DNA of 63,367 nucleotides, filler included, from Basidiobolus meristosporus CBS 931.73 (lineage: Eukaryota > Fungi > Basidiobolomycota): the NCBI GenBank assembly GCA_002104905.1. It is 3 parts of 3 records of this genome, joined end to end, with 100 filler letters (N's around TTAATTAATTAA, not from the genome) between each part and the next. Parts side by side here need not be neighbours in the genome. Positions count along the whole stretch, not along the records: positions 54,062 to 63,367 come from MCFE01001327.1; 2 more parts are not named here. The stretch is one strand, 5' to 3'. Below the pieces are notes generated by a model. The model was given only the letters and a program-made list of their open reading frames with translations. It ran no database searches and was not told the origin of the DNA. Shown here in pieces: positions 11,744-63,367 of this stretch. Every line of letters begins with the position of its first letter. The stretch's first letter is position 1. Position numbers and translations under genes: made by a program.

Positions 11744-12134
11744 TTAATCGAAGAGACCGAAACCCATATCGTCGTCGGATTCCTCCTTGGCCTCCTCCTT
11801 CTCTTCGGCAGCGGGGGCAGCCTCGGCGGAACCGGCGGCGGAAGCACCAGTGGCGGCGGCAGGGGCAGAGCCAGCGGAGCCGACGTTCATCAACAAGTCA
11901 CTGAGGTTCTTTCCAGCCAAGGCCTTGGCGAAAAGGGAAGCCCAGATGGGTTCAACCTCGACACCGGCAGCTTTGATGAGGGTGGTGAGCTTGTCAGACT
12001 AGAGCGGGAAGTCGGTTTAGCGAAACAGTTTGCTGCGTGGGGCTCTAGTACGAGACGATGGGACTTACGGTGATTTCAACCCCGTCATCTTGAAGGATGA
12101 GGGAAGCGTAGACGATGGCTTGTTCAGCAGACAT
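11744..12134 (-). CDS. RPP1: 60S acidic ribosomal protein P1 (106 aa; exons 12134-12069, 11998-11744)
   Basis: Spliced product [49 protein letters not shown]...[20 protein letters not shown] has the canonical P-protein C-terminus and the P1-type W..LFAKAL. 70-nt GTAAGT..TAG intron; CCACCATG start. Confidence 0.97.
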
Positions 12135-12615
12135 GGTGGCCTAGTTGTGATGCGAGGCTACGGGAAGAGAAGCTTCGAAACCTGATCTGCCATTCCTTTT
12201 GTTGGAGCCATTGACGATCCTTTTCTAGGGTCCATTGATTTTTGGCGTGCGCCCTCTTTTCCGATCGATGCCCCCTCCCCCCTCCAGCATCAATCTTGAT
12301 CATGGCTGAGGACGACTTGGCACGCTTGGTCTTATTTGGATCGGCAACCCTAGCCCTGATCCCGGCCAGCTGTGAAGGTTTCAAGGCTCTCGGCTTGGTG
12401 CCATTCAATTCCCGAATACAGTGGACTTTTTGCATTACACAAGGATCATCATTGAAGCGCACTGACGCGGAGTGGAGCATCCGCAGAGAGCGCACAGCAC
12501 CCCGCCCGTGGTATGCGACGAAGGGCCCTGTGGCAACGGTATGACTGCTGGAGGTATGATCGAAATTCCCGAAAGAATGGGCTTTATTACTTAGTACTAT
12601 ACGTCTTCTCTACAT

Positions 12616-13554
12616 CTACAATACACCCTCAGAAAACCCTCTTGCGAAGAACTGAACATTGTTGTCCAGGGTCTTGTACTGGAGTACCTGTGGAATGAAC
12701 CTGGAGTCTCTGCAGGAGGGTCCTCGAATCAATGCGACCTAGGGAAAAACGCAACCTCTTAGTAAGCATCGAGGGCGACGAACCAAAGAGCCACCTACCT
12801 GTCCGTTGACTTCCTTGGAATAGCCACTGCCCAAAGCCTTGACCTGTAATATGTATGCGGTTTGGTACATCAGGAGCTTCACGAGACTCTCCTGCTCCGG
12901 ATCTTCCAGTAGAGCCTGATCGCTGTGAACCAACGAGACCAATGTGCCTCCATTCTTCTCCATCAGCAGCCTGCTCGCTTGCATGAATCTCTGGAGCTCC
13001 CGCACCGAGACCCCGAGATTGAGTAGAACAGAGACATCGTCGTAGATCAGACAGGTCTGCCCCGCCTCCTCCGAAGAAACCAACCCCTCGAGTTGGCCCA
13101 GGAGGCTCTCAAGGGTGTTTTCCGGAGACAGCGGCCCGAGAACCAGTTCAGGTGTGGTGGGAAGAACAGTGGTGGGTGGTGCAGGGATCTTGCCGGAGCT
13201 GAGCCCGGTCAAGCCGTCGACGAACTTGAACCGGCCGCTCGTCTTGGCCGCGGTCAGGTTCACCCCCTAACAGTCGAGGTAAGTATGCAGAAAGGTCAAG
13301 TGGGTGCGGACTTCGGGTGGACCTACCAATTTGCGGGCAACCAGGTTGTAGTGGTTGAAGATCTGGGAAAAGCCGACCAGCACCACGCGGGTGTTGACGC
13401 TCGTGGGCTTCAGGAAGGTCGTCAGAAAGTGGTACAACAGGAAATCCCCGTTCGCACCCAGGGTGTCCGTGATCAGGAAGTTCTTCCCCCGGGGCGGTAG
13501 GAAGTGTTCGGTATCCTCCCAGTGGAAGGCGGAATGTAACGTAGCGTAGCCCAT
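12616..13554 (-). CDS. ELP6: Elongator complex subunit 6 (272 aa; exons 13554-13327, 13266-12799, 12738-12616)
   Basis: FLITDTLGANGDFLLYHFL, HY..VARKLGVNL, LIYDDVSVLL, L.YQTAYILQVKALGSGYSKEVNGQ and YKTLDNNVQFFARG match Elp6-family patterns. Two 60-nt phase-0 GT-AG introns. Confidence 0.88.
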
Positions 13555-13999
13555 GGTGAAGTGGGTTTCGGTGGAAAGTCGAGTGTCGGGTAAGAGTAAG
13601 CGCGGTTCAAGAAACCCCACCCCCGACCTTGCCACCGGACCCGATTTCGTAGGAGAAAAAATTCCTTCCCAATGCCATCATGGGTCACCGGGAATCCAGT
13701 GCGATTCGATGCTGAGGTTCATTGGGAATCGGAGAAAAATTTCTTGCCACACCTGGGCATCTGGTTGGTGTCGATTTAAGCGGTGGGTGAGCGCACTTTC
13801 CATGACGTTTGCTGGATAGCAACTCCTTTGCTTGCAATATCGCGTCTGTGGAGAATCCGCCACTTCGAACTACAACTAGTCTTCATAGGCCCTTTCTCCC
13901 TGCGGAATCTTCCTGGATCACCTTAGCGGGAAGAGTAGGCAATTCCCAACAACCTGAAGGTTACATTGCTCAGCGTTCTAGCAACTTTGGTTGAGTGCA

Positions 14000-16429
14000 A
14001 AGGGCTGGCCACGTTTTATTGATATATATACCTGGTCGGCCTTTTTGCCCATTTCTCTGCGCAGACACATGGTGCTGAAACAATATTGAGTAGGTTTAGC
14101 AAGAGCATACTTGCTTATTGTTGGTGTGGTATTCACGAGACTGGAGATTCTGGCCACCATCAACTGAGAGATATTGATATTTTCCAGTCACTTCACAAGT
14201 ATCCTCTCAGGAATTACTTGGTATTTTTTGACGCTCATCACCTGGGTAGCTAGTCCTAAGCAATGGCAACACTGTGGGGCAGCGATTATCCTTTATCTCT
14301 CTTGGTTAGGCTCTTTCGAACTCTATGAATCCACAGAGGTTGTACTTTTATGTTGGTCTTTCTCCAAACCAAATACGGGGTTGTAATACTGATTAATATC
14401 GACAAATGTGTGCTACGGTGGTAGTAGCAGTGAGATTCCAATTGAATGTCAATGTATCCCTATGAAAAATCTCAATATTGGAACTCTTCTGATAATCTGC
14501 TGGTGTTCTGATGGTGTTTTGCTGGCATCCAGATGCTGTTTTTCCTCCATACTTTCAGTTGCAATTTCTGGTGGAAATAGCAAGGAGCTGATCACTAAAT
14601 ATGGTACAAATGCTATTTAGCCTAGTCTCATCCTGGAAAATCTCTGCTTGTCTGCCAAGTAGTTTGTTCCTGTGATATTGAGATTTGTATGTTTAGAGAA
14701 ACTTGGAATTTGGCCAATATTATGATGGTATTCTATTGGCCTTTTCTCAACTTCTTTTCTTGGGGTATCTTCACATGAATGGATACTGTTAACTGGTAGG
14801 GCATCTATGTTGATGCACTTAGGTGCTTTGGTACTATTAGGAGCACTGTATCAGACAAAGCACTAATACATTTTGCACATCAACAGGTGTAGTGCCACTA
14901 ATGTATTAAAGAAAGTCCAATTCAGTTGTTTGAGAAGCAAAGAGTCATTATGGATACAGTCACTTGATCTAAATCCATTTGCAACATACAATATAAGTTT
15001 TTGTTGCTAACTTCTGACAATACTGATATATAAATAGCCCATTCATATCAGGAGTAAGAAACCCAGTTGGCAACATTAGTTTTAATGATTTCCCTTATAC
15101 AATTAACTTCTTTTGCTGGATAGTGCCATATAGAGCCGGCCATTCTGTCATCTTATGGTACTATATGTTATTAGTAGTTTTACCATTGGGGCAGTCAGGC
15201 CAGTGCCTCAGAAAGAGTGCTATCACAGATAATCCATTAAAAGGCCATCACAAAGCATAGGTTTTGTGATCAAAAGGTACTGATGTCATCAGGACATCAT
15301 GTAAAAACTCTGGGAGAAAATTGCATGTAAGATTAAAAAAGCACAGTTAATATTTTCCATCGGAATGGTCCTAAGCTGCTTCTGATTGATACTCTGCCAT
15401 TTCTCTCACTTTCTGTTCTCAGACACTTAGTCATCCCTTACAGCTGTGTACATTGACTGACTATACCTCTTTTTCACACTAATTACTTACTGACTCCATT
15501 AGCACTCTTACCTTTGATACATTCAAGTTGGTGTACATCAATTGAATCTTCAGTTGTAACTCAATTTTATACTGTACTAAGCTATACAGGTCTCTGTATC
15601 CAATACTAACACTGAACACAACCTCACACTCATCCAGTAAATCCATCAAAATCTGCTATTTAAAATATGCATCTGCCTTAGTCCCTATTAAAAATAATCT
15701 GGTCCTACATGTAGATCTAATCACATGAGTTGTCAGGATCTTGCCAGAAGGCCAAGATGATGCCAGCAGCTTGAAATTCCTCACCATCCTTCTAATGTTA
15801 TGGTTGGGTTGTGACAGTGTTTTGCTGCTTTTACTACCAGATAGAGTAATAATAATAACTAATAAACTTGATAGTATTTTGAGAGTGTTTTTGCAGGGCT
15901 TATATGGCATTTAGATGGTATTAAAGCATTATAAATTCATTTGAGCAGACATGTCAGCCAATATTAGCAATTTCCTTATACAGCAACAACCCAAAGGTGT
16001 TTTGATGGCCTTGATGCAGACATCAGCTGGCATTATAATGAAAGTATATTAGTGGTAGAGATCTATGCATTTAGCTTTATGCTTGTAGTATAGCTGCTCA
16101 TATCCCATCACAAACTCCTTACAAAAAAGTTGTGGATGTGCTAAATTGGCATTGGTTATCTACTTTGACCACATATTCTTACAGCATCAGCATATGACTC
16201 CCAATGCTTGCAATGCATACTGGGTAGAAAATACTTTAGAAGGCCACTTGAATAAATACATATCCAGTTCATTCATTCATGGCATTTGTATTGTTGTATA
16301 TGCTGACAAATATGTATTGAAGCTTGTGAAAGCTACTTTGAGTGCTGGATACTCTGTAATACCTTGTCAATTCTTTCCAGTTTCTCTGGTATCTCAAAAA
16401 GCTGATTAAGCTTAGTATGCCCTGCATAC
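14000..16429. other. Unclassified AT-rich, CpG-depleted relic (continues at 19402-20146 beyond the copia insertion)
   Basis: Joined to 19402-20146 by the copia TSD CATAC. 15345-15470 is a diverged repeat of 19885-20010. No recognisable domain. Confidence 0.3.
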
Positions 16430-54061: not shown

Positions 54062-54680
54062 AACAAGTCAATTATACATTTCTGATACAGTATAATCAGG
54101 AAGTACCAAAAGCCTGGACCACTAGTTGCAATTAATATGGGTGTGGATAGGTGAACAAGATAAATGACAATTGTATCATCAATCAGCTGATGTCTTGGCA
54201 ACTGCTAAGTGATTAGATAGATCTTAGATGACTAATTATCCAGGAAGTTCTTGCAAATTGGTTTATAACTTAATGATCTTAGGGAGAGGAAAGTCACCAA
54301 GTGGTGAAATCTTTATTTACTTATGACAAGTTTTGAAGTAGCCATGTTAATCTGAAGTAATACCTAGAAAGCCAGGCCTGAGAGATATCTTCCTGGTAAG
54401 CCAGGTCTGAGAGTTGAAAAGCTGAGTAGCACTGTATCTCCTAGTTAGCTAGGTCTGAGAGAGATTTCCTGAAAGCCAGGCCTGAGAATTGAGAATCTGA
54501 GTATACCTGAGGTGAATTGTACTGATTTGCAGTAGCTGATTTGTAGCCAAAAAGGCCGGTGGACTGGGGGAACTGAGAGGAATTTCTGGACAATCACTGG
54601 CATTGTTTACTAGGCAAATCTGACCAATTGGCATTTGGAGGATTTTAACCAATCAAATCCTTTATTGTGCCCAATAGTTG
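54062..54680. repeat. Unclassified LTR-like repeat fragment with four AAGCCAGG(C/T)CTGAGA-like subrepeats
   Basis: Subrepeats at 54369, 54398, 54446 and 54473. 54157-54235 is homologous in inverted orientation to 57711-57791. Confidence 0.5.
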
Positions 54681-54766
54681 ATCAAGCCATCTTCCAATGA
54701 GCACACATCAATTTATTGATCAAATATTGTTGGATCCAGGATATGAACCCACAACCATGGGTATGG

Positions 54767-56432
54767 TGTTGTAAGAGTCTTGGAGATATTGGAAGTGATT
54801 GGGAGAACAAGCAGATTATGTGGTTTTCACTTAATGATTTATTGAATGTAAAAGAAGTATTTATACTTTTACATGGTCTTGGAGTAACAAGCATATAGAA
54901 CAGTTTAAGGAAGGTGCCAAGATCATGTGTGCAAAGTTTGGGGCTGTTTTGACAACTTTGAGAATTTTCATGCTCTGGGTACCTGGTATTTTGGTGAAAA
55001 TATTCTAAGTAAATCTCAACAAAGAATTTGGTCAGTATTCTCTAGCATATGAAGGTAATGATCCAAGTGACTATGTAAGGTGAATATTTAGGTGGAAATA
55101 CAAACTTTTACAACACTCTCACACAGCTAAATGCTCATACTGACTAGTCCTAATTTTGCCCTAAGATATTGAAACTTGTCTCTAGCTAATGGTTTGGTAA
55201 ATATGTCTGCAATCATTTCATCTGTAGGACAGTAAACTAAGCTAACTAAGTTATTCTCTATAGCTTCACATAGAAATGATGTCTAATATCTATGAGCTTG
55301 GTTCTAGCTCAAAAAGTTGGATTTCTTCCTAATTGTATACATCCATGATTATCTTGAAATAAAGTAATAGGCGTTTTTTGACATATACCTAAATCTGTAA
55401 ACGTTTTCTTAGCCACATTGCTTCTTTTGCAGCTTCACAGGCTGCCATATACTCTACACATGTGGTAGAAAGTGCCACAGTTGGTTGCTTTCTTGAATTC
55501 CATGAAATTGCTCTTTGACAGTAAAGAAAGGTGTATCCTGTGGTGGATCATCTGTCTTCTGAGTTTTGTCCCCAATCAGCACCAGAGTATCCCACAAGAT
55601 CCTGTTCTGAGTCCTCATAAGTGTATCTTAAGCAGATATCAGCAGTTCCTTTTAGATATCTAAAAATCCGCTTAACTGCTGCAATATGATCAGATCCATA
55701 GTTCTGATTATGATGACTGACAACTCCCACTGAATATGAGATATCTGGACATGTTCCAAGCATGATATACATTAGACTGCCGGCTATAGATTGATAAGGA
55801 AAGTCAGGGCTTTCAGATGGCACCAAGGTCTCTTGATCTGGTTGAGTTTTGACCAAGTTAAGGTTTGTTTCCATTGGGGTAGCTGCCAGTTTACAGTCTT
55901 CCATTTGGTACTTCTTTAGTATATCTTGAGTATACTTGGACTGGCTTAGGGTGATAGTCTGGGTACTTCTGTCTATGGAGAACTTAATCCCTAAGTAGTA
56001 ACTGAGTTCTCCTAGATCAGACATCTTGAACTCCTTAGATAGGCTGGATTTAGCCTCTTCCAATGTTTCTAGGTTATTGGTGCCTATAATAAGATCATCC
56101 ACATATAGAGCTAATAGAGCTGGATTTGCTTTATCTGGCTTATGTTATATACTATAGTCAGCATTACTTTTGAAACGCAAAGATTCTAAATAAGAATTTG
56201 TCTTGCAATTCCAAGCTCTTGGTGATTGTTTGAGACCATATAGTGACTTTTTAAGCTTGCAGACAAAATGGGGGTTATCTTGGTCAACAAACCCATCAGG
56301 CCAATCCATATACATGTCCTCATCAAGTTCTCCATTCAAAAATGCAGTTTTTACATCCATTTGATGAATAAAAAACTTATATTTGGCTGCAATAGCCAAT
56401 ATTAATCTGATAGAATTAAACTTGGCTACTGT
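54767..56432 (-). mobile_element. Copia 3' portion (3' LTR 54767-55115, RNase H, RT), interrupted at 56433 by a gypsy LTR
   Basis: ORFs 55548..56102 (DDLIIG, DLGELSYYLGI, YQSIAGSLMY, ADWG) and 56145..56513 (QMDVKTAFLNG, LYGLKQSPRAW). Confidence 0.9.
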
Positions 56433-57502
56433 TGTGGTGGTGTATAAGTCCAAGGGAGAGATATGTCCAACACTTCTCAAGTGTTTTGTGTGTGGGGTGT
56501 TCACTGGGTGCAATAACCTCTGGCAAAAGCTTGCTAGGAATACTTGGGTTCTGTCTCTAATCTAATGTGAAGGGGAATAAAGCCACAAGCTTGTCAAGGG
56601 AAAACTATTGAGCTACAATCCCCAACTTAGTTGGCATCTTAACAAAAGTATGTGCTGGGTTCAGCATCCTTTGAGATGACAATGTACTAAAGCTTCCAAA
56701 GTCAAAACAACTGTAAACTCCACCAGCAGGGACTTGATAAGAATGTAGCTGTGGTCAATAGTTACAAAGACAGAAAAGTATCTTTGCCTGTACAAGAACA
56801 CACTTGAGAAAGAATCAAATACAATAAAAGATACCTACTCTGAGTATTCCTCACAAGTAGTGCCTCCAAGGTTAGTTAGCTGTCAGCACAGTTTCCTGGG
56901 AGCATCCTGTGGTCTGGGGTTGGAAGTTCAGGTAGCAGCAGGTAGCAGTGACCACACTAATCAACAAGTTGGTATATTGATAAAAAGGATGATGATTTAC
57001 TGTTGAGGGATAGCCTCCCTTATATACTTTTCTTACTGGCTAAGTGATTACTAATCATGGTGTTCCAGAAGGTTCCGTATATCAATAGAACTCTTAATGC
57101 CATCAGAATGACCTAAGAATGTTCTAAGTAGGTGTTGGAAGGTTCTAAGAGGCACAGCACATCCAACCAATCAGGAATCAGTACTGTGAAGCCTGTGTAA
57201 CATAGGGATATCATATATGGTATTGAAATGGTAGAGATGGTGACACAGGCTGACCATGTGTCATGGGTACCAGTACAGGTACTTGCCCAATATAGAAGCA
57301 CTTACTGCTAGTAATCTTACATAAAGTAGGGGATAACTTACGCAATAGGTTAGCAGTTGTAGTACTTAACCGGCTTATGGGATAGTACTGATCAGGTAAG
57401 ATAAATGGGTTAAAACTAAAATATGGGTAGTAGAGAAATAGGTAAGTAGAAAATATGGGAATGAGCACATCTGTCAGTGGGTGTCACTGTCACCCCACTA
57501 CA
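56433..57502 (-). repeat. Gypsy-family LTR, copy e
   Basis: Homologous to copies a-d. The right flank is not the continuation of the copia on the left, so no clean TSD. Confidence 0.9.
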
Positions 57503-57789
57503 CTGGTTGTTGTGCATCAACGTTTAAAAACTTGGCCAATTTCACTTTGTTAGAAAATCTAGCATCCTAACTGATTTTCCCTAACCCAAACATAACTAGT
57601 CCCTGTTATGGTTTATTTTATCACTTCTTGGAATCTATTTTTAGCTGTCACACCTGATCAATTTTATGTGGTCATTACATCCTCTACTGATCTGCTAAGC
57701 CTTTCCAAGTGATTAGTCATATGGATTTATTCAACCACTTGGCAGTTGCCAAGACATCAGCTGATTAATGATGCAATTTTTCATTTATC

Positions 57790-58658
57790 TTAGGGGGGAG
57801 ACAGTCACCAACAGGTAAAATTTTTATTTCAGTTGAAACAAAGAAGCCAGCACTACTGTTGTAGCTTTGATACAAGAGTGTGTAGCTGAGGGGAATTTGT
57901 ACGTAAGTTTACAAGAAGAGATGATAGTTCTTCAGTGCTCAAGACACTGTTCAGTGGGAAGGGGGGTAGCAAGAGGGGTAAGAATGATTTGTGAACAACA
58001 TCAATGAGGGGAATATGATAAGAATTGATATTCATCATAAAGGGAGTGTGCTGCTTCAGATATTGCTACCAAAGGTCTGTCAAGTACTTGAGGTAGGCCA
58101 GCATGGGTTTTTCTGACCACAGAATATAGTGAGCAAACTTCTTGACTTTAGGATCTCCAAGTATAGTTCTCCAGCAGGAGTCAGGTGTAGTGTGATGTGT
58201 TCTCTTCCAGGTCTTGATCAGTGGGTTGTTGCAGTGGTGAAGTTTGAGATATAATCTGGTTCTAAGGTAGAGTAGTCTGATCTTGTAGGGCATAAGCCCA
58301 AATGCACCAAGAATAGCATGTCTGTAGGGGCATTCAGGCAGATAAGGCACCAAGGATGTAATGCACCAGACTGCAAACTTGTCAAGCTTAGTGCAGTATC
58401 TAGAAGTAAGAGAGAGAAGTGGTAAGCCAAATTCCAGGACAGGGAAGACAAACTGCTTGAGTAGAAGGAGGCAGCTGGGAGCAGAAGTTGTAGGAGGAGC
58501 TACAGCCAGTAGCTTGTGCAGTGCTTGACTTGCCAGGATAATTCTCTTCTTCAGGTGTGTTCCAGAGTCTAGTCCAGTAGGAAGGAAAGGAAAGCCAAGA
58601 TATGTAGCAGAAACTTAAGCAGATAGTGTGCAGTTGTCTAAGTTGATAGGACAACCCA
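57790..58658 (-). mobile_element. 5'-truncated, diverged copy of the telomeric non-LTR retrotransposon
   Basis: Aligns with 58662-59530 of the full copy (ORFs 57853..58038, 58066..58353). 3' junction reads TTA-G6-AGACAGTCACCAACAGG on the + strand. Confidence 0.9.
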
Positions 58659-58725
58659 GGGTTAGGGGGGGAGACAGTCACCAACAGGTGAAATCTTTAT
58701 TTCAGTTGAAACAAAGAAGCCAGCG

Positions 58726-61494
58726 CTACTGTTGTAGCTTTGATACAAGAGTGTGTAGCTGAGGGGAATTTGTAGGTAAGTTAATAAGAAGTGATGATAG
58801 TTCTTCAGTGCTCAAGACACTGTTCAGTGGGAAGGGGGGTAGCAAGAGAGGTAAGAATGACTTGTGAACAACATTAATGAGGGGAATGTGATAAGGATTG
58901 ATATTCATCATAAAGGAAGTGTGCTGCTGCAGATATTGCTGCCAAAGGTCTGTCAAGTACTTCAGGTAGGCCAGATTGGGTTTTTCTGACTGCAGAATAA
59001 ATTCTGCAAACTTCTTGACTTCAGGATCTCCAAGTATAGTTCTCCAGCAGGAGCCAGGTGTTGTGTGGTGTGTTCTCTTCCAGGCCTTAATCAGTGGGTT
59101 GTTGCAGTGGTGAAGTCTGAGATATAATCTGGTTCTAAGGTAGAGAAGTCTGATCTTATAGGGCATAAACCCAAAAGCACCAAGAATAGCATGTCTGTAG
59201 GGGCATTCAGGCAAATGAGGCACCAAGGAGGTAATGCACCATACTGCAAACTTGTCAAGCTTAGTGCAGTCTCTAGAAGTAAGAGAGAGAAGTGGTAAGC
59301 CAAATTCCAGTACAGGGAAGACAAACTGCTTGAGTAGAAGAAGGCAGCTGGGAGCTGAAGTTGTAGGAGGAGTAACAGCCAGTAGCTTGTGGAGTGCCTG
59401 TCTTGCCAGGATAATTCTCTTCTTCAGGTGTGCTCCAGAGTCTAGTCCAGTAGGAAGGAAAGGAAAGCCAAGATATGTAGCAGAAACCTGAGCAGGTAGA
59501 GTGGAGTTCTCTAAGGTGATGGGAGAGCCCAAAGGTACTGTCTTTGCAATGGAAAGCTGGAGATTATTCTTCTGCAGATACTGGTGGATGGTCTGGGAGT
59601 CTTGTTGCACATTGGAGGAGGATATTCTGATGTCATCAGCAAAGAGAGTAACCAGGCAGTCAGCTGAGAGTCTTGGGAAATCATTCAGGAAGATGGCAAA
59701 CAGTATAGGACCAAGCACAGAGCCTTGAACCACACCATTAGGAACTGAGAACACAGCTGATTGCTCACTTGGGTGCAGAATTCTTGCTTGTGGATCCAGA
59801 AACAGGGACCTGACAAGGAGGGTGAGAGAGGTACTGGAGAAGCATTGCAACTTGGACCAAAGCAGATTTCTGTCAACTGAATCAAAGGCCTTAGTAATAT
59901 CAAACAGAACTGAGGGATACTTGCACTGGAGAGAGTGATCTTGGCTAAGTATGACTGCATATTCCAAGGAGAGGCCAGGAACAAAGCCAAACTGTGCAGG
60001 ATGAAACTTGAGGGAGTCAGAGTAGAGCTCCTGAGCAAGCAGAAGCTCAAACACCTTTCTGCAGGTGGGCAGCAGAGATATTGGCCTGTAGGAGCTAGGA
60101 TCCAGGTGCTTTCCTTTACCCTTGTACAGTGGCAGAACATTTGCAAAGGACCATTCCTCAGGAGTAGAAAGCTGGGCTGAGCATTGCTGAAACAGTGGAA
60201 GCAGAAGTGCAGACATGGCCTTGGTACTAGTCTTCAGAAGCTCATAAGAGATTGTGTCCACACCTGGAGCAGTAGAGTTGGGAAGCCTCTTGAGCACATT
60301 ATGGATTCTCCTTTGATCAAGTGCAAGTGGGATGGGCAGAGTCTTGAAGTCAGGATGAAAGCCAGGAGTTGAGTACTGCTTTGTAGAGAAGAAGATGTTA
60401 GCCAGCTGTTCTGTTGAAGGTAACTTCCTGGAAGAGGGCCTCATTGCCCTGTAGAGTCTTGATACTGTTCTTGTTATAGAGTTGGAAGATTGCAGAGGCA
60501 AGGAACTCATAATATGATCCCAGAGCTGAGTATGCAGAGTGTGGTGAATTGCCCTGGAGTGGTGTATTGCTGTCAGGAGGAGTTTCTCTGTTTTTGGGTT
60601 AGGGAAACTCAGGTAGCTTTGTTGCAGGGCTGAAACAATGGATTCCCATTTTCTTGAGGTAACAGCAGTAGTCTTGCATGGCAGTGAGAGGGAGGCAGAC
60701 ACCAGAATCAGATGCTTCACAAAGAGCCAGGCATAGTTGAGATCATCTGGCAGAGAAAGTAGCAAACTGGCAAGCTTCAAGTAGTTCCCAAAGTCTTTCT
60801 TCTGATTCTTGGTAGCTTTGTGGGTGAGCACAGTAAGTTTTGGCAGCTTCTTCTTCACAACTGGTTGCATAGAAAGGGACCAGGCTGGGTGGTCAGAGGC
60901 TCTCAAGGATCCTAGCTCAGCTCCAGAGAATTGCTTAACTTCATCCACAAAGTAGAGGGCAGCAGCAGAAGGGCAGATCCAGTCAACACATCTTTTCTCT
61001 GATTGAGCACCTAGTGCTAGCAGATGGCTTTCTCTCAGGAAGTTCAGTAGGAATGTAGACCTTGGCTTCATTCTTGCAGTCAGAGTAGTCTTGTTCTCAG
61101 GATGGGGAATGTTGAGATCTCCAAGCAAGATAATAGGTGTTGATATAGATTGCTGGTATTGCTGAACTTTCTGGCATATAACTTGCACTTCCTGAAGGGC
61201 AAGACTTGGAGGCAGATAGCAGAGCACCAGACTGATAGTTGGCAACTGGAGAGCAGCACAGTAAGGGGAGTAAAGAGGAACACAGAGCTGAGGAGTATTG
61301 ATGGTAGAAGAGATGAAGCAGATAGAGGAGGTATTCTTTGTTCTAGGAGTAGAAAAGCAATATAGATTAGTCAAAAGTATAGAAGGTAGCTGAACATCAA
61401 TCAAACACAGGAGGGAAAATCTTGAAAGAAGTCTCTCTAGAGTTGGTCTTGATGGCTGTATGCTGTTGCAGTTAAGCAACAGAACTTCAGGTAG
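58726..61494 (-). CDS. LINE ORF2: APE-type endonuclease + reverse transcriptase (no upstream AUG)
   Basis: APE motifs VLLLNCN, LCYLPP, LLGDLN, VDWI, ASDHP. RT motifs YRPISLLPTCRKVFE, QFGF, FDITKAFDSV, GVVQGSVLGPILF, LFADDI, YLGF. Uninterrupted for ~922 codons. Confidence 0.95.
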   Translation of the reverse strand, partial: LPEVLLLNCNSIQPSRPTLERLLSRFSLLCLIDVQLPSILLTNLYCFSTPRTKNTSSICFISSTINTPQLCVPLYSPYCAALQLPTISLVLCYLPPSLALQEVQVICQKVQQYQQSISTPIILLGDLNIPHPENKTTLTARMKPRSTFLLNFLRESHLLALGAQSEKRCVDWICPSAAALYFVDEVKQFSGAELGSLRASDHPAWSLSMQPVVKKKLPKLTVLTHKATKNQKKDFGNYLKLASLLLSLPDDLNYAWLFVKHLILVSASLSLPCKTTAVTSRKWESIVSALQQSYLSFPNPKTEKLLLTAIHHSRAIHHTLHTQLWDHIMSSLPLQSSNSITRTVSRLYRAMRPSSRKLPSTEQLANIFFSTKQYSTPGFHPDFKTLPIPLALDQRRIHNVLKRLPNSTAPGVDTISYELLKTSTKAMSALLLPLFQQCSAQLSTPEEWSFANVLPLYKGKGKHLDPSSYRPISLLPTCRKVFELLLAQELYSDSLKFHPAQFGFVPGLSLEYAVILSQDHSLQCKYPSVLFDITKAFDSVDRNLLWSKLQCFSSTSLTLLVRSLFLDPQARILHPSEQSAVFSVPNGVVQGSVLGPILFAIFLNDFPRLSADCLVTLFADDIRISSSNVQQDSQTIHQYLQKNNLQLSIAKTVPLGSPITLENSTLPAQVSATYLGFPFLPTGLDSGAHLKKRIILARQALHKLLAVTPPTTSAPSCLLLLKQFVFPVLEFGLPLLSLTSRDCTKLDKFAVWCITSLVPHLPECPYRHAILGAFGFMPYKIRLLYLRTRLYLRLHHCNNPLIKAWKRTHHTTPGSCWRTILGDPEVKKFAEFILQSEKPNLAYLKYLTDLWQQYLQQHTSFMMNINPYHIPLINVVHKSFLPLLLPPFPLNSVLSTEELSSLLINLPTNSPQLHTLVSKLQQ

Positions 61495-63003
61495 TCAGGC
61501 AGAGGTTGTAGCTTCTTCAGAGGCAGCATTGACAATGTGACCTGCAGAGTCCCAGAGCTCTTCAAATGGTGCATCACTTAAGTCAGCAAGGAGGGAAATG
61601 GCATGGTTCTTGAGGAAGTATGCCACATCATAGGAGGGGGCTTGTCTCTTGATGGCAGCAAAGAAAGACAGAATGGCCACATGGGCTGGAGGCTTGTTGA
61701 ACAGTAGAGAGTCAGAGGATTCAGATTCTTCAGGCACTATCTTGAAGTCAGTTTTCAGCCAGTTAAGGTTCTTCTTCACAAAGGCAACAAATGGGTCAGC
61801 AATGTTTTGGTCTAGGATAACCTCCAGAATCTTCCCTTTTCTCCAGGCCAGGTTGACAATTCTTGAGAGCTGAATATTGCATGCCTTGAGTGCTTTCCTG
61901 ATGTTGGAGATGGGAGTCCAGGGAACTTGCTTCAAGTACACCACAGTCCAGGTAGAAGCTGGTGGTAGGTTTGCTGGGGGCTTGTAAGTCCTTCTGTGTG
62001 GCAATGGAGCTGCAGTAGTCAGATTGGAGTCCACATTCTCAGTAGAGGGTTTTCTTGATGTGTCTTGCTGAATGGTACTGGAGCTGGATGTGTTGATAAT
62101 TCTTGCTAGAACCTTGCCTGCATAAGTCTGAGGTATAGCTGAGGTGACTGTAGAGGTGGTGGCAGCTGGTGCAGGTGGAGAGGCAGAAACTGAAGCAGGA
62201 ACTGAGGTCACCTGGGAGAAGGCAGTAGAAGCAGGTTTTCTGGGAGGAACAGAGTTCACTATCCAGTTGTTCTGTAAAACACTGGAGTAGCTTTTCTGTG
62301 GAACAGGATCTTGCTCTTGAACAGGAACAGAAGCAGCAGGCTGGGGCTGAGCAGTAGTGGTAAGGCAGTGGCACTCCAAGGAAGCTTTTTGCAAGGCATC
62401 TCTGGCAGTTTTCAGGGCAGTATTGGCTTCATTCTTGAGCTTCTTGCATTGGGCATCCAGTCTCTTGTTTTCAATAGTCAGGGCAGTATTGGCAGCCTCT
62501 AAATCAGCAATTCTCTTCTCAATTGCAAGGAATCTCTGAAGAAATGCATCAGTAGAAGTGCTGGCATCTGGGAGAGCAGTGGCAGGAATAGAGTCCATTG
62601 ACAGTGGGCTTCTTGGAGGCAAGGAAAGTGGACTGGCAGATTCAGGCACAAAAGGAGATATCCTGGCAGGAGGAGAAGGAGTATCCAAGGCAGTAACAGA
62701 GGCAATTCTTGTTGGTGAAGCAGCAGCAGGGGAGGCAAGCCTGTTCAGAAACTGGGCAGGAGAGAGTGCTTGAGGAGAGGGAGTCTTCAGCTTGCCAAGC
62801 ATGTCTTCCATCAGAGTGATACCAATATTCCTGGTGCATTTGCAGAGAAAAGTAAGCTTCCTGAGTCTGCCAGCTCTTCCATTCCTTCTGATAGTTCCTT
62901 TGTTTCCACAGTTGGGGCAAGAAATCTTCTTGATAGACTTGTCAAAGCAATCAAGAACCTTCCTTTCAGGTGTAGTGGGCTCCTGTTGAGGTTTTGGTGG
63001 CAT
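61495..63003 (-). CDS. LINE ORF1 (502 aa from first ATG): N-terminal Cys4 motif, coiled coil, Pro/Ser/Thr-rich linker, RRM-like C-terminal domain
   Basis: CPNC..x22..CKC. Heptad segment FLQRFLAIEKRIADLEAANTALTIENKRLDAQCKKLK. SYSSVL motif. WTVVYLKQVPW..IRKAL..IVNLAW..LEVIL alternating strand/helix pattern. Domain calls are inferred. Confidence 0.85.
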   Translation of the reverse strand: MPPKPQQEPTTPERKVLDCFDKSIKKISCPNCGNKGTIRRNGRAGRLRKLTFLCKCTRNIGITLMEDMLGKLKTPSPQALSPAQFLNRLASPAAASPTRIASVTALDTPSPPARISPFVPESASPLSLPPRSPLSMDSIPATALPDASTSTDAFLQRFLAIEKRIADLEAANTALTIENKRLDAQCKKLKNEANTALKTARDALQKASLECHCLTTTAQPQPAASVPVQEQDPVPQKSYSSVLQNNWIVNSVPPRKPASTAFSQVTSVPASVSASPPAPAATTSTVTSAIPQTYAGKVLARIINTSSSSTIQQDTSRKPSTENVDSNLTTAAPLPHRRTYKPPANLPPASTWTVVYLKQVPWTPISNIRKALKACNIQLSRIVNLAWRKGKILEVILDQNIADPFVAFVKKNLNWLKTDFKIVPEESESSDSLLFNKPPAHVAILSFFAAIKRQAPSYDVAYFLKNHAISLLADLSDAPFEELWDSAGHIVNAASEEATTSA

Positions 63004-63168
63004 ATCCAGAGTTTCAGCTTCAAATTTCAATTTTTGAGATTTCTGGGTGATTTTTGATGGGCGGGATCAAAATTAGGGTTAGGGTTGCGCGCTGTGACTG
63101 CTTTTTACGATCGCAAGGTCAGAACCTAGGAAAAAATAAAATAGTTAGTAAGGTGATTTAATGGATGG

Positions 63169-63367
63169 TTAGGGTTAGGGTTAGGGTTAGGGTTAGGGTT
63201 AGGGTTAGGGTTAGGGTTAGGGTTAGGGTTAGGGTTAGGGTTAGGGTTAGGGTTAGGGTTAGGGTTAGGGTTAGGGTTAGGGTTAGGGTTAGGGTTAGGG
63301 TTAGGGTTAGGGTTAGGGTTAGGGTTAGGGTTAGGGTTAGGGTTAGGGTTAGGGTTAGGTTAGGTTA
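63169..63367 (+). repeat. Telomeric (TTAGGG)n tract
   Basis: 31 perfect TTAGGG units (63169-63354), then TTAGGTTAGGTTA at the sequence end. The G-rich strand points outward. Confidence 0.98.

Follow-up and report, generated by a model that had tools for sequence, protein, structure and literature searches.

A chromosome end of the fungus Basidiobolus meristosporus CBS 931.73 (assembly GCA_002104905.1) raises the question of how a retrotransposon can keep about 4.3 kb of open coding sequence without a single CpG dinucleotide. The stretch analysed, referred to below as the window, is 63,367 nt long, and its positions 54,062–63,367 are the chromosome-end piece (9,306 bp of MCFE01001327.1). This piece carries a near-full-length retrotransposon without long terminal repeats (non-LTR), or long interspersed nuclear element (LINE), encoded on the minus strand; as in non-LTR elements generally, LTRs are absent and 5′-truncated copies are present. 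The reading to which we incline, at slightly better than even confidence, is that the LINE belongs to a small family of telomere-repeat elements with an apurinic/apyrimidinic endonuclease (APE)-type domain, and that its CpG-free state is the end point of CpG-directed decay together with selection at the level of lineages.

The first-pass annotation of the window had reported no CG between those at 58724–58725 and 63062–63063, against about 200 expected, in a region with plentiful GC dinucleotides and without extreme AT content, and had asked for a computed count, in which many CpGs might come to light. The count gave 0 in 58726–63061 (4,336 bp; 220.6 expected from 1247 G and 767 C), beside 255 GpC and a G+C content of 46%. 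The positions given for the stop of the second open reading frame (ORF2) and for the flanking CpGs were correct, ORF1 and ORF2 were both found open on the minus strand, and the proposed restriction of arginine to AGA and AGG, with no NCG codons, was borne out by 60 of 60 arginines and 0 NCG. At codon boundaries, C preceded a G-starting codon in 0 of 312 cases and third-position C amounted to 22–50% before A, C or T; the avoidance thus acts on the dinucleotide and not on codon choice.

The observed/expected ratios of the LINE were 0 for CpG, 1.65 for TpG, 1.15 for CpA and 0.58 for TpA. The flank showed CpG 0.07, TpG 1.28 and CpA 1.26, a CpG deficit with TpG/CpA excess that is the classical footprint of deamination, and the adjoining truncated, dead LINE copy showed CpG 0.03. 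Over the whole 9,306-bp piece, 17 CpGs were present against ~410 expected. When the CpG rate of the flank was applied to the LINE, ~16 CpGs were expected, with P(0) ~1e-7, and four lineages pooled gave 0 of 809 expected CpGs, with an upper 95% bound of ~0.004 compared with 0.07 in the flank. None of the 40 majority variants among thousands of copies creates a CpG. The truncated copy has a private CpG at 57902, a position occupied by G and not by C in the majority of the other copies. The sense strand of 58726–63003 is also poor in G (17.7%) and rich in C (28.8%), with G at 11.5% of second codon positions and glycine at 2.2%; this skew is common to all relatives, and CpG loss alone is not a sufficient explanation for it.

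Relatives were taken from ENA assemblies or from Logan contigs of public sequencing runs and are labelled L0xx, the window element being WIN. A search with ORF2 gave five close relatives at 48–80% identity and then matches at ~30% over the reverse transcriptase only, the nearest named ones being aphid, rotifer and bug elements; a profile search with ORF1 added three more lineages and KAK9660169.1 of Basidiobolus ranarum, and an atlas search returned generic LINE clusters only. The contig of this B. ranarum protein, L064, showed 76% nucleotide identity to the window and 79% to L002 over the 5′ untranslated region (UTR) and ORF1. No coding CpG was found in seven lineages, for ~1,100 expected in total (0/219 in WIN, 0/216 in L001, 0/191 in L002, 0/189 in L004–L008, 0/54 in L064, 0/125 in L065 and 0/104 in L067). 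Three lineages were less depleted, namely L009 (15/218, observed/expected 0.07), L010 (14/159, 0.09) and L066 (52/158, 0.33). The Logan contig L010 terminates in an Illumina adapter (AGATCGGAAGAGCGTCGTGTAGGGA; L010:3827–3852), to which three CpGs of the contig are due. As a control, 29 distant LINE contigs from a scan of Joint Genome Institute (JGI) metagenomes with the ORF2 profile (at most 38% identity) gave 0.23–1.09. Since the third codon positions of the CpG-free lineages are near saturation (39–52% identity), the CpG-free state has been maintained through extensive turnover. In L009, 12 of the 15 coding CpGs lie within ~380 nt (L009:849–1230) that encode a low-complexity Pro/Ser/Ala linker of ORF1.

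The distribution of arginine codons gives the order in which CpG may have been lost. L066 contains 19 CGN, 5 NCG and 9 codon-boundary CpGs, and L010 contains 9 CGN, 3 NCG and 1 codon-boundary CpG. At conserved arginine columns CGN is common to L066 and L010, which belong to different clades, and AGR is found in all other lineages. In the ORF1 tree, which was rooted at the midpoint only, CpG-free lineages fall into two of three clades and L010 is the sister of CpG-free L067. The simplest reading of these codons takes CGN as the ancestral state, with several independent replacements by AGR. If CpG is mutationally hazardous while the protein is under selection, purged lineages should have AGR and those purged less should have CGN, as is observed; the order of loss likewise agrees with CpG hypermutability combined with selection on the protein. 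L066, the least purged lineage (19 CGN versus 7 AGR), comes from the same run, SRR29713745, as L067.

Apart from a single private CpG in the 3′ UTR, all CpGs of the window element lie in its 5′ UTR. Five are present there (63062, 63088, 63090, 63108 and 63112), which gives an observed/expected ratio of 0.97 over 163 nt, and four of the five are conserved in L064. The block CGTAAAAAGCAGTCAC of the 5′ UTR is conserved in L064 and, together with a CpG immediately upstream, in L005 and L009, and all seven CpGs of L065 (7/7) lie in the 5′ UTR. The retained CpGs fit an unmethylated or functionally constrained promoter above a methylated body. Their survival at the likely promoter argues against the simple idea, put forward in the first-pass annotation, that CpG-based silencing is largely blind to the element. 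The wider proposal of which that idea formed part, a purge of CpG under 5-methylcytosine (5mC), is supported in part: the absence of CpG is real, old and directional and the CGN/AGR pattern agrees with it, host methylation being the presumed component, and its invisibility clause has partial support only. Two points escaped the first-pass annotation, the almost equal depletion of the flank (0.07) and the telomere specificity of the element. The 5′ UTR also contains a two-unit telomere-like box, AACCCTAACCCTAA (63073–63086 on the minus strand), which is conserved in the B. ranarum element (L064:145–158); a telomere-repeat-binding factor that influences the promoter could bind there. About 65 nt present in L064 and L009 are missing from the window 5′ UTR.

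These patterns indicate a long-lasting CpG-specific pressure, with cytosine methylation as its most likely cause. In the model that we prefer, repeats in this genome would undergo strong CpG-to-TpG/CpA decay, most simply by DNMT1/UHRF1-type methylation and deamination. Synonymous and codon-boundary CpGs would be lost first, and CGN arginines, which cannot decay without damage to the protein, would then be replaced by AGR because CGN-bearing lineages keep making defective or silenced progeny. CpGs would persist only in the short conserved 5′ block, owing to functional constraint or to being kept unmethylated. DNMT1, UHRF1, HELLS and two Dim2-like enzymes are recorded for B. meristosporus, for which the 5mC column is empty (eLife 2023, PMC10538959, source data). 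Were decay alone at work, as in a pure mutational equilibrium in which every repeat ends up nearly devoid of CpG and the LINE experiences no selection, the values of the flanking copia fragment and spacer (0.07, with a symmetric TpG/CpA excess) and of the truncated dead copy would be accounted for. The active lineages nevertheless lie at least 20-fold under this plateau of neighbouring dead DNA, a distance that calls for an extra force acting on them, and dead copies gain private CpGs, such as that at 57902. Furthermore, conserved arginines have moved from CGN to AGR, which deamination alone cannot bring about and which is why lineage-level selection is favoured; equilibrium by itself is consequently quite unlikely. 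Repeat-induced, CpG-directed hypermutation, in the manner of repeat-induced point mutation (RIP) or methylation induced premeiotically (MIP) and performed for example by the Dim2-like enzymes, would leave CpG-free lineages as surviving non-targets. The extreme abundance of the family in the source runs, the two Dim2-like methyltransferases and the fact that CpG has been purged further from the high-copy LINE than from the copia fragment agree with such a process. In classical RIP, however, TpA is enriched, and here it is depleted (0.58); the differences between the two window copies are a mixture of transitions and transversions with no C-to-T burst, and we know of no RIP- or MIP-like process of this kind in Zoopagomycota, so that hypermutation is considered unlikely.

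Avoidance at the level of RNA, by a CpG-sensing restriction factor or nuclease or by codon or translation selection and not by DNA methylation, would suit an element that replicates through RNA and has low UpA (0.58), as many RNA viruses do. It is very unlikely, since the CpGs of the 5′ UTR survive although a transcript initiated at the 5′ end would include them, the non-coding and non-expressed flank is depleted too, and the absolute avoidance across codon boundaries does not correspond to tRNA or codon preference; to our knowledge no ZAP-like system exists in fungi. Apart from the oddity of the zero count, nothing suggests that the sequence was engineered to lack CpG, altered by conversion or mis-assembled, and an artefact of any of these kinds is scarcely conceivable: GpC and the other dinucleotides are normal, thousands of copies occur in four runs of the source sample, and independent assemblies from other samples and centres, which led to the exclusion of an artefact, display the same state at 48–80% protein identity. 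A bolder proposal is that CpG-lessness is an evolved and repeatedly reached immunity, by which the LINE escapes DNMT1/Dim2-dependent silencing and mutagenesis while keeping its promoter CpGs, and stays active at thousands of chromosome ends alongside telomerase in normal end maintenance. We regard it as doubtful, though worth entertaining; if true, the family would correspond in a fungus to the TRAS/SART elements of insects or to the Drosophila telomeric retrotransposons HeT-A, TART and TAHRE (HTT), with its own telomere-repeat 3′ tail and UGA readthrough.

Several observations weigh against decay with lineage-level selection, the account preferred above. 5mC is reported to be near-undetectable in early-diverging fungi (2026 review, PMC13297926). 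The CpG comparison is confined to LINE lineages, flanking DNA and distant LINE contigs, which bears on the CpG content of the genome as a whole. The midpoint root leaves the number and direction of the CGN/AGR changes insecure, and TG-to-CA double substitutions, counted as a sign of transient CpGs, at 14–22 observed versus roughly 8–14 expected, are confounded by coding constraint. The L010 type (0.09) shares an array with CpG-free L004, and zero is thus not forced in every lineage. Finally, readthrough and the specificity of the endonuclease, both discussed below, are deduced at the level of sequence.

The loss of CpG from methylated transposons is textbook knowledge and is normally seen as the decay of dead copies. 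In the present family, intact, anciently diverged and very abundant lineages have not one CpG left in over 4 kb and have all arginines recoded, in a host group reported to have almost no 5mC, and from the graded ratios of their relatives the order of CpG loss can be read. The family therefore offers a natural system in which to ask whether a transposon can evolve beyond a CpG-directed defence, and at what cost. Methylated transposons, such as mammalian L1 ORFs and those of basidiomycetes, and CpG-suppressed viruses share the TpG/CpA excess, and human L1, like the present element, keeps its CpGs chiefly around the 5′ promoter (the L1 5′ UTR). Unlike methylated transposons, the present family lacks CpG altogether over 4.3 kb, does so in several active lineages of ancient divergence and has arginine fully recoded to AGR. 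For CpG depletion in methylated transposons, methylation-driven deamination is the accepted cause (PMC7431005, PMC12582260).

The association of the family with telomeres was apparent from its ends. The 3′ ends observed in the window and at nine related loci are all composed of AATAAA, a TCACC-N4/5-GGTGA palindrome, 5–9 C and TAACCC(TAA...), and poly(A) is absent from all of them. L002–L009 repeat the layout of the window 3′ UTR, as does the 3′ end that lies upstream in L004. Prokaryote genomes and viral contigs, searched with the 3′ UTR motif, yielded a repeat in a Neisseriaceae metagenome-assembled genome and chance matches, with normal CpG and no telomere tail, and these candidates were rejected. 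The flanking telomere repeats have a fixed orientation, (CCCTAA)n lying 5′ of the window element and CCCTAA(CCCT) beyond each 3′ end. Head-to-tail arrays were found in WIN, L004 and L005, the next element beginning after one to two telomere units. When the element was compared with the Logan contigs of the source sample, the telomere tract itself being kept out of the query, 12,000–15,500 contigs aligned, their summed depth rose ~10-fold from the 5′ end to the 3′ end, and many joints connected internal positions to the 3′ terminus with 0–21 nt of TTAGGG-type letters between. The number of contigs, the depth gradient and the joints indicate that the family is very abundant, mostly 5′-truncated and arrayed with short telomere seeds.

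On this evidence the LINE family is, as far as can be judged from its sequences, specific to telomere repeats, inserting into or being added onto TTAGGG. A CCCUAA-type tail at the end of its RNA would allow pairing with the telomeric G-strand, and this strand, nicked by the endonuclease of the element or available as a natural 3′ overhang, would prime reverse transcription. Because the G-strand would be the primer, the 3′ end of the element faces the centromere; a proximal 3′ end and a distal 5′ end are the orientation that such priming predicts. Conservation of the endonuclease argues for its use in insertion. Telomerase repeats may later cap the 5′ end of the element, and repeated rounds would lead to head-to-tail arrays of 5′-truncated copies. 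The 5′ ends of the elements start with CATCC repeats (CATCCATCCATCC; window 63150–63166, the L005 3′ end, L009:50–75 and L064:50–70), and the complementary 3′ end of the cDNA, which would accordingly be G-rich (GGATGG...), might be capped more readily by telomerase. At L004:1–700, a 3′ end of the L010 type is joined via CCCCCCCCCTAA to a 5′-truncated element of the L004 type; as the two types are 46% identical in ORF2 and lie in one array, two lineages share one genome.

The two ORFs are arranged in one frame and separated by a single UGA followed by CU in nine of nine lineages (C-UGA-CU[ACU]; WIN, L001, L002, L004, L009, L010, L065, L066 and L067). An in-frame downstream ORF and a conserved stop context, the features of a leaky stop, were thus both found, and the first ATG of the window ORF2 is codon 142, within the endonuclease. 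Since the frame is shared, UGA-CU is invariant and no ATG precedes codon 142 in ORF2, readthrough of the UGA is the likeliest route to ORF2 on these sequence grounds, and it would produce an ORF1–ORF2 fusion. Among LINEs this arrangement is unusual; it recalls the readthrough of the gag-pol type. In five lineages a hairpin lay 12 nt beyond the UGA, with four compensatory pairs in six sequences; no consensus RNA structure after the UGA remained across nine lineages, and the hairpin was dropped as a feature of the family.

The reverse transcriptase of ORF2 was recognised by Pfam RVT_1 (E=2.6e-25, above the curated cutoff), and the best PDB sequence match of ORF2 was human L1 ORF2p (E=6e-13). The N-terminal domain matched Pfam Exo_endo_phos_2 with E=4.9e-4, which is below the cutoff on its own. 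Its AlphaFold model (predicted local distance difference test, pLDDT, 79) retrieved the L1 endonuclease, the TRAS1 endonuclease (1WDU) and APE1 in Foldseek, all with E ~1e-10, and the catalytic motifs N, D, GDxN, DW and SDH are invariant in six lineages. According to the model, this domain is an APE-type endonuclease. ORF1 begins with a Zn-ribbon-like CxxC...CxC and has a coiled coil at aa 147–210, followed by a C-terminal domain of beta-alpha-beta-beta-alpha-beta topology and then helices; CCHC zinc knuckles are absent from ORF1. The C-terminal domain gave no significant PDB match, only weak ferredoxin-like ones (E above 0.006), and a kinship of ORF1 with RRM or L1 ORF1p was not established, the VIA search being dominated by the coiled coil.

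By analogy, the family resembles TRAS/SART in function, and its arrays are like those of Drosophila HTT in form. TRAS/SART elements (R1 clade; Bombyx mori and other insects) likewise have two ORFs with an APE-type endonuclease and a reverse transcriptase, lie in or beside telomerase repeats, with which they coexist, in one fixed orientation and form several diverged lineages per genome, and one of the best fold matches was to the TRAS1 endonuclease (1WDU). Their target is TTAGG and here it is TTAGGG; they end in poly(A) and the present elements in a CCCTAA-type tail; their ORFs are joined by an overlapping stop-start and here by the in-frame UGA. In further contrast to TRAS/SART, ORF1 has no CCHC knuckles, only 0–21 nt of telomere repeat lie between copies, and the endonuclease fold is no closer to TRAS1 than to the L1 endonuclease or APE1. 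The window LINE accordingly lacks two features of the R1 clade, CCHC knuckles in ORF1 and a poly(A) tail. HeT-A, TART and TAHRE share head-to-tail terminal arrays, distal 5′ ends, numerous 5′-truncated copies and addition to chromosome ends. Drosophila, however, has no telomerase repeats, whereas such repeats cap and separate the copies here, and the Drosophila elements have poly(A) tails and long UTRs.

Athena and Coprina elements reportedly have 3′ ends with short telomere repeats in reverse complement, which would allow pairing with the G-overhang, as Gladyshev and Arkhipova are said to have noted in 2007. These endonuclease-deficient Penelope-like elements have a reverse transcriptase of another class and no endonuclease, in contrast to the intact APE domain found here. 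MoTeR of Magnaporthe oryzae and FoTeR of Fusarium oxysporum have a single ORF and a restriction-enzyme-like endonuclease of the CRE/SLACS type. The present element has a separate ORF1 and an APE-fold endonuclease and, because its endonuclease is APE-type, is not of the MoTeR/FoTeR type, although both form fungal telomeric non-LTR arrays at chromosome ends. MoTeR and FoTeR are described as fungal non-LTR elements within TTAGGG telomere arrays and with telomere-like repeats at their termini (PMC7367193, PMC12857005). In the literature searched, which was incomplete, no description of such a telomeric LINE family or of CpG-free LINEs was found, and the literature searched likewise gave no paper on the CpG content or telomeric elements of Basidiobolus. 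Besides the absence of CpG, the features for which that literature gave no description are an APE-type LINE with a telomerase-repeat tail in a fungus, large terminal arrays and the ORF1-UGA-ORF2 organisation.

The features of the chromosome-end piece are collected in Table 1.

Table 1. Features of the chromosome-end piece, given as positions in the window.
Feature	Position	Strand	Basis and remarks
Telomere tract, ~33 (TTAGGG) repeats	63167–63367	+	Read directly; reaches the end of the piece and marks the chromosome end
5′ UTR of the LINE, 163 nt	63004–63166	−	Abuts the telomere tract
ORF1, 502 aa + TGA, 0 CpG	61495–63003	−	Translation
ORF1/ORF2 boundary, in-frame UGA then CUA; putative programmed readthrough site	61492–61497	−	Frame shared, context conserved
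ORF2, 922 codons + TAG, 0 CpG	58726–61494	−	Translation, Pfam, fold matches
APE-type endonuclease domain of ORF2 (predicted)	~60865–61494	−	Pfam, model and Foldseek
Reverse transcriptase (RVT_1) of ORF2	~59461–60099	−	Pfam
3′ UTR, 68 nt	58658–58725	−	AATAAA at 58696–58701; private CpG at 58724; without poly(A)
Possible hairpin TCACC-TGTT-GGTGA in the 3′ UTR	58678–58691	−	Sequence
C7 run and TAACCCT, telomere-type tail of the 3′ UTR	58658–58671	−	Sequence
Second LINE copy, 5′-truncated, ~94% identical, three stops, ends in CCCCCCTAA	57790–58657	−	Follows the first copy in head-to-tail order
Decayed Ty1/copia reverse transcriptase and RNase H fragment	55551–56561	−	Open stretches only; the element reaches further on both sides

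No Rfam match was obtained anywhere in the 9,306-bp piece. The final repeats of the telomere tract, at 63352–63367, are irregular (TAACCTAACCTAACCC on the minus strand), probably through a read error at the contig end. A decayed Ty1/copia element with many stops, at 54062–57780, adjoins the LINE array on the same strand; every relative of its fragment carries PF07727, and these relatives are unnamed or are plant or bryozoan sequences, at 36–47% identity.

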